Source: Magallana gigas
Taxonomy: Eukaryota
Assembly: GCF_963853765.1 (NCBI RefSeq)
Contig: NC_088861.1
Coordinates: forward strand, 48,980,001-49,044,000
DNA length: 64,000 bases
Direction: 5' to 3'
Shown: positions 1 to 2,785 of the stretch, piece after piece
Layout of the letters: the number at the start of each line of letters is the position of its first letter
Numbering within the stretch: position 1 is the stretch's first letter
Made by a program: the position numbers and the translations under genes
Notes under the pieces: model-generated
What the model saw: the letters and a program-made list of their open reading frames with translations, nothing else
The model's database searches: none
What the model was told of the DNA's origin: nothing

Positions 1-69
1 GCCGGTATATGTAGCAAATCAGAGTGAAAACCAGTAGCAGCCATCACCATTGCAACGCATTCTAAAGAT

Positions 70-2280
70 TTGCAAAAGCAACAATCAGACGAATCAGAGA
101 TTGCTGAAGTCATAGAGTGGCTAAGAAACGCACATAGGGCAGGTTGGGACAAACTATCTACACGCAGCACAAGTTTAAAAGCGTACTGGGCTCAGTTTGA
201 CCAGTTGTCAGTAAGAGACAATATATTGTACCGAAAATGGTTTACAAACAAAGGAAAAGTGGAGAAAGAACAAGTAGCGGTACCAAATTCCATGAGGTCA
301 ACCATTCAAAAGCAATGCCATGATGCACCATCAGGAGGACATCTTGGTAGGCATAAGACTCTTACAAAAATAAAGCAAAGCTTCTACTGGCCAGCCATGG
401 ACAAAGATGTAAGAAGATGGTGTGCGTCCTGTCCTGATTGCGCAAAAAGAAAGAAATACGGTAAAACTCCACGTGCGCCTTTGCAAGTTACCGGAGCAGG
501 GGACCCAGGAGAAAGAGTTGCGATGGACATTTTAGGTCCCGTTCCTACATCAAACAGAGGGAACAAATACATTTTGGTAATTCAAGACTATTTCACAAAA
601 TGGGCTGAAGCTATTCCAATACCGGACATGAAGGCCAAGACGGTAGCGCAAGCTTTCATAGACAATTACGTTACCAAATATGGCGCACCTAGAACTCTCC
701 ATACTGACCAAGGACGCCAGTTCAAATCAAGATTATTCAAACAACTGTGCGATATACTGAAAATCAACAAGACTCGCACGACCCCCTACCATTCGCAATC
801 TGATGGCATGGTGGAGCGCATGAACCGCACACTTGAAAATATGTTGTCAATGTACATTGATTCAAATCAAAAGAACTGGAATGAAAACCTTCAGCTGGTA
901 TGCATGGCATATAGATCTGCAGAGCACGAGAGTTCCGGATTTACACATAACTATTTAACTTTTGGACGGGAGGTTGTACTGCCAGTAGAACTAGTAGCAG
1001 GTTTACCCGCTCATCAGAAGAGATCAACAGAAGAATATATCAATGAACTAGAAGATTCATTGGCAATAGCGCATGAAATAGCAAGAAATAATTTGTCGGA
1101 CGCTTTGAAACGGCAAAAACTGAGATACGACTCAAGACTGTCCTGGAAGAAATTTGACATTGGCAGTAAGGTTTGGCTGTATACCCCTAAGAGAACCAAA
1201 GGCATCTCACCAAAGTTTCAGAAGTGGTGGACAGGGCCGTATACGGTGCTGAAGAAATTCAGTGATGTCACATATCAAATTGGAAAAGACAAGAATCGAT
1301 TGGTAGTCCATGTTGATAGGTTAAAGACTTGTATTTGTCGTGAAGAAACAAGTGAAAGTAACGACAAGAAAAATAATGGTAAAGAAGTTTATTTTAAAGA
1401 AGACACAAATGACCCTCCGTATGTTTCGGACATAATTATTGACCCTGTTGTGGTTCTATACACTGATGACGATGCAGAGACCTTCAGTGTAGCCGGCGCT
1501 ACAGATTCAAAAGATCAAAGGTTTCATCGCGGAGCAACTACCCGGTATCAAAGACAATGCCGACCACCGAGACGGTTTGAAGATTTTCAATTGTATCGCT
1601 TGTCGGGAGTAGCCGAGACATCAAAGAGAGAGCCGCTCAATCCAAACATCATTGCTTGTGACTGCCATTTGCAAACTTGCAATCGTATGGCTAAGACGAA
1701 AAATACGGTGCGTAAAGTATCTGCAATGCATAAGTGTCCGCTATGTATAGAAATTTTCCAGAGCCCTGAAGAAGTGCTAGACCACGTTGGACGTAAACAC
1801 GACAAAAGGTTATGGTGTGAGTACTGCGACTACACATCTGAAAGATCAGCAGACATCAAGAGACATTGCGAACGCCGCCATCCTTCGCACGCCGATGTAG
1901 AGAGACCCAAGTTACGGATAGAGGAAGACTGTACTACCCGCTGCCGCACTCAGCCTATGCCTGTATTCAACCCTAAGAAGGACAAGCCGGCTGCGACCGG
2001 ATCATCGCGCGACAAGAATAACAACGCTGACAGTTTGATGTCCGTTATATCCACGGATGTTGTTCCTCCTGTAGATCAACATAAAACTTCTGTTGCGCCG
2101 CGATGCGATCAAACCGCCAGAAACGTTGGATGCCAGACGGATGCTGTTTACCTGTGTAAGGATGCCGCCATTCAGTGCAATGCGGAAATCGCGAGCCGTT
2201 GTGATGTTACCACCCAGTGCAATGGAGTTATCGTTCGTAAACGACGCGTATCTGAAGCCGAGTGGACGGAGTTTGAGTGA
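70..2280 (+). CDS. pol: Gypsy Pol C-terminal part: integrase (HHCC zinc-binding, DDE core, GPY/F domain) with an in-frame C-terminal extension carrying two C2H2 zinc fingers; 5'-partial
   Basis: CHDAPSGGHLG...CASCPDC (HHCC); VAMDILGP / LHTDQGRQF / GMVERMNRTL (D,D,E); WWTGPYTV...VHVDRLK (GPY/F); CPLC..H..H and CEYC..H..H at 1735-1881. The TTG at 70 is not a true start. Confidence 0.92.
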   Translation: MQKQQSDESEIAEVIEWLRNAHRAGWDKLSTRSTSLKAYWAQFDQLSVRDNILYRKWFTNKGKVEKEQVAVPNSMRSTIQKQCHDAPSGGHLGRHKTLTKIKQSFYWPAMDKDVRRWCASCPDCAKRKKYGKTPRAPLQVTGAGDPGERVAMDILGPVPTSNRGNKYILVIQDYFTKWAEAIPIPDMKAKTVAQAFIDNYVTKYGAPRTLHTDQGRQFKSRLFKQLCDILKINKTRTTPYHSQSDGMVERMNRTLENMLSMYIDSNQKNWNENLQLVCMAYRSAEHESSGFTHNYLTFGREVVLPVELVAGLPAHQKRSTEEYINELEDSLAIAHEIARNNLSDALKRQKLRYDSRLSWKKFDIGSKVWLYTPKRTKGISPKFQKWWTGPYTVLKKFSDVTYQIGKDKNRLVVHVDRLKTCICREETSESNDKKNNGKEVYFKEDTNDPPYVSDIIIDPVVVLYTDDDAETFSVAGATDSKDQRFHRGATTRYQRQCRPPRRFEDFQLYRLSGVAETSKREPLNPNIIACDCHLQTCNRMAKTKNTVRKVSAMHKCPLCIEIFQSPEEVLDHVGRKHDKRLWCEYCDYTSERSADIKRHCERRHPSHADVERPKLRIEEDCTTRCRTQPMPVFNPKKDKPAATGSSRDKNNNADSLMSVISTDVVPPVDQHKTSVAPRCDQTARNVGCQTDAVYLCKDAAIQCNAEIASRCDVTTQCNGVIVRKRRVSEAEWTEFE

Positions 2281-2356
2281 CAATTTTGTGAATAGTGAAC
2301 ATTTTATGTGACTTTGTTTACGCGATTCGGGACGAATCTACAAGAGGCGTGGGTTA

Positions 2357-2785
2357 TGTTACGGACTTTATCTTTTATAAAAGATTGTATTATAAATGTA
2401 AATGTGATTATCGCCCTTTAATTCTGTATTTTGTGAAATTGTATAGATGTCGCTTTATATTTGTCACGTGATCACTGTCTATATAAATGTTGATTATCGT
2501 GATATTTGATTATTCTTTGCTTTGCTTGGTTTTGGATAAGAGCTCAAGTTTCCTGAATAAGGAACAAATGAAGTCCTGAATAAGGCATGGTCAATTAGCC
2601 TGAATAAGGCTGCGACTATTCAGTTTACAACTGCTTAGCCTGAATAAGGCATCAGCTATTATTATTGTTTACATTTGATTCAATCCAGTGCTGACGCATA
2701 TTTGCTGTTTTCAAATTGATAGACTTCCAATAAATCCATAAACACAGAGACTTGTTTTACTTCAAGCAAAACGAACCCCGTAACA
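2357..2785 (+). repeat. 3' LTR (429 bp) of the Gypsy element
   Basis: Begins TGTTACG and ends CGTAACA (7-bp terminal inverted repeat); follows a purine tract; AATAAA at 2729-2734; four internal CCTGAATAAGG copies. Confidence 0.85.

Follow-up and report, generated by a model that had tools for sequence, protein, structure and literature searches.

The window analysed here is a stretch of 64,000 nucleotides (nt) from the oyster Magallana gigas (GCF_963853765.1, NC_088861.1:48,980,001-49,044,000, forward strand; position 1 is its first letter). Positions 1-2785 are the 3' end of a low-copy, recently mobile Ty3/Gypsy long terminal repeat (LTR) retrotransposon, whose integrase frame runs into an accessory gene. 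Read directly, frame 1 is open from 28 to a TGA at 2278-2280, and the preceding stop in this frame is at 25-27. The integrase tail ends in the motif RYQRQCRPPRRFEDF (1543-1587), after which there is no stop codon in frame 1; the frame continues through a linker of 33 codons, an ATG at 1687 (MAKTK), two zinc fingers and 130 further codons (Table 1). A first-pass annotation had reported that no stop follows the tail motif, and had placed the ATG at 1687 and the fingers at 1735-1881; re-reading of the frame bears out all of this. It had taken the region of interest to be 1500-1881. The fingers stand, but the end at 1881 does not, as homologous coding sequence continues to 2277.

The read-through is not specific to the window copy: it is also kept by the copies C1 and C5, by contigs of other sequencing runs and at six Pinctada imbricata (pearl oyster) loci. 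The window copy, C1 and C5 run from the integrase to the end of the tail without any stop. Contigs from other runs (Logan assemblies) yield a cluster of 50 proteins, several of which are frames of 1116 amino acids (aa) that join reverse transcriptase, integrase and fingers. The P. imbricata element is 6985 bp long and has identical 380-bp LTRs, with the same primer-binding site (PBS) and polypurine tract (PPT) as the oyster element; its integrase core is 77% identical to that of the window family. Six P. imbricata loci read, in one frame, ...RRRRQPKRFEDF, a linker of 24 residues, then MARTKSTVRKQAAM..CPLC and the fingers, and three of the six reach the shared C-terminus ...SEWTEYE. The start of the fused part in Pinctada reads MARTKSTVRK. 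The linkers (33 residues in oyster, 24 in Pinctada) are not alignable; both are open, and they differ by nine codons, a multiple of three. A third word search, started from the Pinctada protein, gave no further member of the fused group. The comparison of copies called for in the first-pass annotation thus speaks against a copy-specific loss of the stop, the read-through being kept in family members and in the Pinctada relative.

The accessory gene is under purifying selection. Compared with a subfamily which is about 80% identical in DNA (L006 and L008), the ratio of nonsynonymous to synonymous substitution rates (dN/dS) of the accessory part is 0.13-0.26 (P 4e-6 and 4e-5); this was the other test suggested for the finger part, and its outcome is positive. 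Among copies, dN/dS of the integrase tail (1327-1587) is about 0.6-1.3, on few changes.

Table 1. Features of the element within the window (positions are those of the window)
Feature	Position	Strand	Evidence
Ty3/Gypsy LTR retrotransposon integrase	28-1326	+	Pfam matches
Integrase H2C2 zinc-binding domain	280-456	+	Pfam Integrase_H2C2 1.1e-22
Integrase catalytic core	505-795	+	Pfam rve 2e-15
Integrase SH3-like C-terminal domain	1234-1326	+	Pfam Integrase_p58_C 5.8e-12
Integrase tail, poorly conserved, ending in RYQRQCRPPRRFEDF (1543-1587)	1327-1587	+	Counterpart motif in related families
In-frame linker QLYRLSG...LQTCNR, 33 codons	1588-1686	+	No stop; no pyrimidine tract with AG before the ATG
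Accessory-gene part, homologue of separate ORF3, 197 codons and TGA	1687-2280	+	Full-length homology, dN/dS
Conserved start motif MAKTKNTVRKVS	1687-1722	+	H3-tail-like; unstructured in model
Zinc finger 1, CPLC-x12-H-x4-H (C-x2-C-x12-H-x4-H)	1735-1800	+	Sequence, invariant C/H columns, fold
Zinc finger 2, CEYC-x12-H-x4-H (C-x2-C-x12-H-x4-H)	1816-1881	+	Sequence, invariant columns, fold
Linear motif R-x-x-T-x-P-x-P-V (RCRTQPMPV), disordered half	1939-1965	+	Conservation in 24 homologues
Three TQT-like motifs, 13-14 residues apart; candidate LC8 sites	2113-2220	+	CQT 2131-2139, IQC 2170-2178, TQC 2212-2220
Polypurine-tract-like sequence adjoining 3' LTR	2342-2356	+	Same in all oyster copies, nearly same in Pinctada
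3' LTR (TGTTAC...GTAACA)	2357-2785	+	Self-BLAST against 5' LTR

The accessory gene in other bivalve elements

In related elements the same protein is encoded by a separate open reading frame (ORF3). A protein search with the tail found more than 20 loci in the oyster genome that combine an integrase, 41-43% identical, with a separate two-finger ORF 38-146 nt further on. These loci sort into six diverged families, in which the separate ORF is about 200-245 aa long. A profile search gave ORF3 homologues of 130-335 aa in Saccostrea cucullata, S. echinata, Mytilus edulis, M. galloprovincialis and M. coruscus; over the six oyster families, Saccostrea and Mytilus, the separate ORF3 is about 200-270 aa. 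Public annotation (NCBI) lists the homologues as uncharacterised, or in one case as 'RE1-silencing transcription factor-like'. The M. edulis ORF3 follows 159 nt past the stop of a 1714-aa gag-pol frame, in an element of 8.9 kb whose 986-bp LTRs are identical. The fingers are beyond chance, because more than 20 oyster loci from diverged families, and elements of three other bivalve genera, have the same pair at the same position after the integrase.

The junction can be placed by comparison with these split families. Their pol frame stops 3-8 codons past R-x-R-[RK]-P-P-x-W-L-x-D-Y, the counterpart of RPPRRFEDF in the window; since pol stops right after this motif, the linker in the window replaces the pol stop and a spacer of 38-159 nt. 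Homology to the window tail is full-length and takes in the start M-A-[KNR]-T-K-x-T, the fingers, the R-x-x-T-x-P-x-P-V and Q-T-[DE] motifs and an acidic C-terminal end. The separate ORF3 always starts M-A-[KN]-T-K-x-T at the equivalent of ATG 1687, and M1, T4 and T7 are nearly invariant in 24 homologues. That the methionine and the start motif hold at this place suggests that the methionine at the junction once was, or still is, a start codon. The first-pass annotation had offered, as the second of two readings, a separate accessory zinc-finger ORF joined to pol, and the split families support it.

In an integrase tree, which is unrooted and has no outgroup, there are two well-supported groups. 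One is the fused clade (the window family and Pinctada), in which the accessory gene is in frame with pol; the other is the split clade (the six oyster families and Mytilus). Integrase identity is 60-80% within the split group and 43-48% between the two groups. The order of fusion and split cannot be read from this tree because it has no outgroup. The accessory gene itself is old: it is present in both deep clades, in oysters, the pearl oyster and mussel.

Architecture of the accessory protein

As modelled, the accessory protein starts with a short N-terminal tail that is conserved, continues with two classical zinc fingers and ends in a long half that is disordered and carries conserved short motifs. 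In an AlphaFold2 model made with 24 homologues, tail residues 15-65 form two beta-beta-alpha fingers with a predicted local distance difference test score (pLDDT) of 85-94; residues 1-14 and nearly all beyond residue 70 are disordered. Both fingers have the classical C2H2 spacing (C-x2-4-C-x12-H-x3-5-H), and the order strand, strand, helix occurs twice in the model. The finger 2 columns C44, C47, R59, H60 and H65 are invariant; finger 1 is of the C2HC type (H-x3-C) in the split clade. In the disordered half, R85, T88 and P92 of the linear motif at 1939-1965 are invariant in the 24 homologues and P90 is nearly so. Pfam scores the fingers below its cut-off (the best match is zf-H2C2_5, 5.6e-4, with 19.9 bits versus a gathering cut-off of 27); short single fingers often score under this cut-off. 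The nearest folds in the PDB (Foldseek) are generic tandem DNA-binding C2H2 fingers at an expectation value (E) of 4.5e-3 or weaker, and the ESM Atlas gave generic C2H2 clusters only. There is no Chromo match in Pfam at E up to 1, and by this criterion the element is not a chromovirus. Neither a signal peptide nor a membrane span was found; the highest Kyte-Doolittle mean over 19 residues is 0.41 in the window protein and 1.35 in the 24 homologues.

Fingers of the same subtype as finger 2, C-x2-C-x-[YF]-x-S-x5-[DN]-L-x-R-H-x4-H, are also present in large number in a host frame of more than 1400 aa at C3:54.79 Mb (L060:5643-9899). This host gene is a possible distant source of the fingers of the element. 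A match in a 2207-aa open frame at C3:54.79 Mb was considered as a second fusion and rejected, as it belongs to a host many-finger gene without integrase.

The start of the accessory part resembles the tail of histone H3. It reads MARTKNTVRKVS (MARTKNTVRK) in C1, C5 and C4a, MARTKSTVRKQA in Pinctada and MAKTK in the window copy. The oyster's own H3 reads (MA)RTKQTARKSTGG (MARTKQTARKST; H3 tail ARTKQTARKST). Thus ARTKNTVRK of the fused clade is to be compared with ARTKQTARK of H3, and TKTTARK of some split families with H3 residues 3-9. Published H3 N-terminal mimics are defined as iMet-Z-R-x-K at a free N-terminus, a class enriched in chromatin-binding proteins (PMC8166343). The pattern fits only where Arg2 is present and the N-terminus is free. 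The window copy has M-A-K-T-K inside the Pol frame and is not a mimic in this sense; the sister copies and Pinctada have M-A-R-T-K, likewise inside the Pol frame, and the split clade has MAKTK or MANTK, without Arg2.

The disordered half carries candidate binding motifs for LC8 (dynein light chain), a host hub protein. The LC8 motif is about eight residues long, lies in a disordered region and has a TQT anchor, often with Asp at -4 and Asp, Glu or Pro at +2 (PMC6607443). Exact TQT occurs 29 times in the tails of the 24 homologues, versus 2.2 expected from composition (13-fold), and there are often two or three per protein; the flanks often have Asp at -4 and Asp or Glu at +2. DKGTQTL, VGTQTEG and DASTQTE of the split families fit the published motif. 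The coding part of oyster LC8/DYNLL is intronless, a single frame of 89 codons at L062:1489-1755 (C3:44659302-44659568); a second, partial LC8 match with a stop is found on C7. A complex of two oyster LC8 chains and two copies of tail residues 138-197 was modelled together with three controls. Its interaction prediction score from aligned errors (ipSAE) is 0.75, versus 0.44 for the best of the three controls, and it passes at a mark that 51 of 78 solved complexes and 2 of 108 mismatched pairs reach. In the model, ORF3 residues 143-151 (2113-2139) lie in the LC8 groove, the pLDDT of the partner is at least 53, and three runs share at least 90% of contacts. That the TQT-type motifs bind LC8 is a moderately supported hypothesis. 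In flies, LC8 dimerises a transposon-silencing complex guided by PIWI-interacting RNA (PMC7861614).

The retrotransposon, its copies and its expression

The whole window copy spans C9:48975800-48982785 (6986 bp) and begins 4.2 kb upstream of the window. Its LTRs (436 and 429 bp, 96.3% identical by self-BLAST against the 5' LTR) have the ends TGTTAC...GTAACA, and a 4-bp target-site duplication, CTAT, is present on both flanks, the 3' one at 2786-2789. The PBS starts TGGTGGCAGC and a purine-rich tract precedes the 3' LTR. With TG...CA LTRs, target-site duplication, PBS and PPT all present, the element belongs to Ty3/Gypsy. Precomputed Pfam matches to Asp_protease, RVT_1, RT_RNaseH, Integrase_H2C2 and then rve are found in the Pinctada relative and in the 1116-aa oyster contig protein, and this is the Ty3/Gypsy domain order of protease, RT, RNase H and integrase. 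Target duplications are CTAT, CTAT, ATAT and GAAG in four oyster copies, which have AT-rich flanks, and CAAC in Pinctada; these 4-bp duplications, and the PBS and PPT shared with Pinctada, show genuine transposition. The PBS TGGTGGCAGC...GGGAT is common to oyster, Pinctada and Mytilus elements of both clades (L047, L048, L055, L061), so the same tRNA primer has been kept throughout the element group. In the window LTR there are four copies of CCTGAATAAGG, starting at 2552, 2575, 2599 and 2639 (2552-2649), downstream of TATATAAA at about 2482; these could be a repeated factor-binding site in the R/U5 region.

All copies are described as found. Upstream of the window, the window copy has in-frame stops and a frame-shifting tandem duplication in pol. 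The duplication is perfect, with 124-bp copies at a period of 122 bp (L047:3881-4126, C9:48979181-48979426), and lies a short distance before the window starts; contigs of RNA libraries from other animals skip it, so that it is private to the window copy. There are four further close copies in the genome. In C1 the LTRs are 99.8% identical and gag-pol contains two in-frame stops. The LTR pairs of C5 and of C4a are each identical; C5 is shortened to 5.1 kb by an internal deletion (1.9 kb), and C4a carries several frameshifts as well as deletions of 34 bp (at the place of 1536-1569) and 1 bp (at 2019). The remaining copy, C4b, is older and is interrupted; it has a stop at the position equivalent to 1622, and lacks 1 bp at the equivalent of 1698 and 3 bp at that of 1768-1770. 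Since the LTRs of C1, C5 and C4a are 99.8-100% identical despite stops, frameshifts and a deletion, it seems that defective RNAs of the family have recently been copied, presumably with proteins provided in trans.

Degraded relatives (L006, L007 and L008, at C9:3.47 Mb, C9:3.65 Mb and C8:1.36 Mb) are about 80% identical to the window family. Within them, the place of window 1611 is the exact end of a high-copy repeat of 246 nt (L006:1255-1500) that contains a (GACA)n stretch; a first look gave more than 1000 genomic candidates for this repeat, and some of these form tandem arrays of about 165 nt. Homology to the window begins exactly after an AG at the place of 1611, and the three loci were considered as retrocopies of a spliced mRNA. 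This was rejected, since the 246 nt upstream come from the end of a high-copy repeat and L008 is an element that has lost much of its sequence by deletion.

The mode of expression probably differs between the clades. Every split family has a pyrimidine-rich tract and a YAG 0-10 nt before the ORF3 ATG, as in TTTTTTTTCTGTTGTAG|AGAAATG and CTCTTTTCATTTGTTGTAG|ATG, and in Mytilus TTCTCTTATATTACAG|ATG. The natural reading of these signals is a 3' splice site for an env-like subgenomic mRNA of the kind that Cer1 uses (PMC10309623), and in the split clade the protein is probably made from its own ATG on such a spliced message. The ATG is preceded by CAG in Pinctada and by CGT in the window family, where no credible acceptor occurs within 75 nt. 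Because both the AG and a credible acceptor are missing there, translation as part of Pol is likely to be the main route in the window family, as judged from the sequence signals. For RNA, reads from two raw poly-A runs, together with two RNA contig sets, were aligned to 6 kb of the element (window family). The joints in these data include one that skips the 122-124 bp duplication of the window copy, one that skips 40 bp within the LTR (in one run) and others within pol that come from single contigs. Short contigs which carry ORF3 (L056, L057) were dropped as evidence of splicing, because they are colinear with the genome and hence uninformative. In two poly-A runs of one study, X20 and X21, aligned to L047:650-6649, the first mate is almost always on the plus strand in X20 and mostly on the minus strand in X21; transcription of the element in both directions could explain this, as could a difference in library strandedness.

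Interpretation and known systems

Taken together, the best explanation is that the integrase frame runs into an old accessory gene, whose product in the fused clade is probably a C-terminal extension of the Pol/integrase polyprotein, with fingers proposed to bind nucleic acid and TQT-type motifs proposed to bind LC8. This explanation is held with good, though not full, confidence. Under it, the TQT-type motifs of the disordered half would attach to the host LC8, and this binding might pair two copies of the protein, tie the integrase complex to LC8-dependent transport, or both. Several viruses use LC8-dependent transport.

A number of observations weigh against this explanation. In none of the four oyster copies examined in full is the rest of gag-pol intact, each having stops, frameshifts or a deletion there. 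For the linker, dN/dS does not fall significantly below the neutral value (P 0.06-0.28), and the sole argument for its translation is therefore that the open frame is kept. No joint between leader and ORF3 was seen in the RNA reads, which are 1-4x deep and represent about 1% of two runs, and the consensus splice donor GTRAGW was not found near the leader in four elements. The anchors in the window are variants (CQT-D, IQC-N and TQC-N), and the model gives their region a pLDDT below 50; in Pinctada the docked CQT is replaced by SQA, and IQC and TQC are conserved there. In the LC8 test one control stood at 0.44, peptide-like disordered partners are outside the calibration of the tool, and the pass may reflect remembered LC8 complexes. 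The cysteines of the 2113-2220 stretch could form a small zinc site instead.

An incidental junction is conceivable: the fusion would have no role, and the zinc-finger protein would still be made alone from ATG 1687, whether by splicing, from an internal promoter or by internal initiation. The methionine and N-terminal motif kept at the junction in every fused copy would fit this, as would the CAG directly before the ATG in Pinctada (as in separate-ORF families) and the lack of significant coding constraint on the linker; the H3-like tail, if it matters, needs a free N-terminus (PMC8166343). It is nevertheless rather unlikely. The frame is open in two lineages, with linkers nine codons apart, and in six Pinctada loci; the window family has CGT rather than AG before the ATG and no good acceptor nearby; and no splice joint was seen, at very low read depth. 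Somewhat less probable still is the other reading offered in the first-pass annotation, in which the fingers form a DNA-binding targeting module; it would read a short DNA motif and steer insertion, as chromodomains do for chromoviruses. The position at the integrase C-terminus, the DNA-bound tandem C2H2 fingers among the nearest solved folds and the duplications CTAT, CTAT, ATAT and GAAG in AT-rich flanks are all compatible with targeting. However, four insertions are too few to define a motif, two fingers would read only about 6 bp, the fold matches are weak, and in the split clade the same protein is unattached to integrase and its finger 1 is C2HC.

That a host zinc-finger gene fragment was recently captured by the window family alone is very improbable. 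The many-finger host gene at C3:54.79 Mb does share the finger subtype (45% identity over 58 aa), and NCBI names one homologue after a host transcription factor; against this, the whole protein of 200-270 aa is common to both deep clades, at the same position, in four genera, and any host capture must therefore be ancient rather than family-specific. An ancient host origin of the accessory gene is possible. Decay of the copy or family, that is, a stop lost without meaning in a dead element, has the least in its favour and can be nearly dismissed. The window copy is indeed old, as judged from its LTRs, and has stops and the frame-shifting 124-bp duplication upstream, and a stop at the place of 1622 interrupts the older copy C4b; yet the junction is open in copies with LTRs 99.8-100% identical, in contigs from other runs and in six Pinctada loci, and the downstream part is under purifying selection.

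Among the accessory genes that metazoan LTR retrotransposons carry, few are understood; one example, CERV of Cer1, was characterised only in 2023. The present gene is conserved across at least four bivalve genera, some elements having it free-standing and others fused to integrase; these two natural architectures amount to a built-in experiment on whether the protein works beside the integration machinery or on it. The LC8-type motifs and the histone-like start lead to concrete binding hypotheses that can be tested by cheap assays; of the two, histone mimicry is the speculative one. A bolder proposal, for which the odds are long, is that the protein hijacks two host hubs, the H3-like tail engaging H3 readers or writers and the TQT ladder engaging LC8; if true, H3 mimicry and LC8 binding would let the element steer integration or blunt chromatin silencing.

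The accessory gene is undescribed; no mention of it was found in the literature searched, including the main survey of mollusc LTR elements (PMC6238403). Chromoviruses similarly carry an extra chromatin- or DNA-related module on the C-terminus of a Gypsy integrase. The window element differs in having a two-finger protein with a long disordered tail and no chromodomain, and in that the gene is free-standing in sister elements. CERV, of the Caenorhabditis elegans Gypsy/Ty3 element Cer1, is an accessory protein made from a spliced mRNA; it is lineage-restricted and needed for export of genomic RNA (PMC10309623). It too belongs to a Gypsy/Ty3 element and has a cysteine-rich putative zinc site, but it is 517 aa long, has five exons, shares its N-terminus with Gag, and the putative site is of the C4 type (PMC10309623). 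The bivalve protein is about 200-270 aa long and has C2H2 fingers, and its splicing is inferred; the two are set apart here by description, not by sequence. Retroviruses carry env in the position after pol. The bivalve gene resembles retroviral and errantiviral env in this position and, in separate-ORF families, in the acceptor-like signal before the ATG; its protein differs by the lack of a signal peptide or membrane span. A protein of Sirevirus, a Ty1/copia element of plants, was reportedly found by Havecker et al. in 2005 to interact with an LC8-like protein. In the host factor ASCIZ, C2H2 fingers at the N-terminus precede a disordered region in which TQT-type motifs recur. ASCIZ/ATMIN is described as a C2H2 transcription factor with many LC8-binding TQT motifs (PMC5963919, PMC10046861). 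The accessory protein has a like layout, fingers and then TQT-rich disorder; ASCIZ is a host gene, and the likeness noted here is one of layout.

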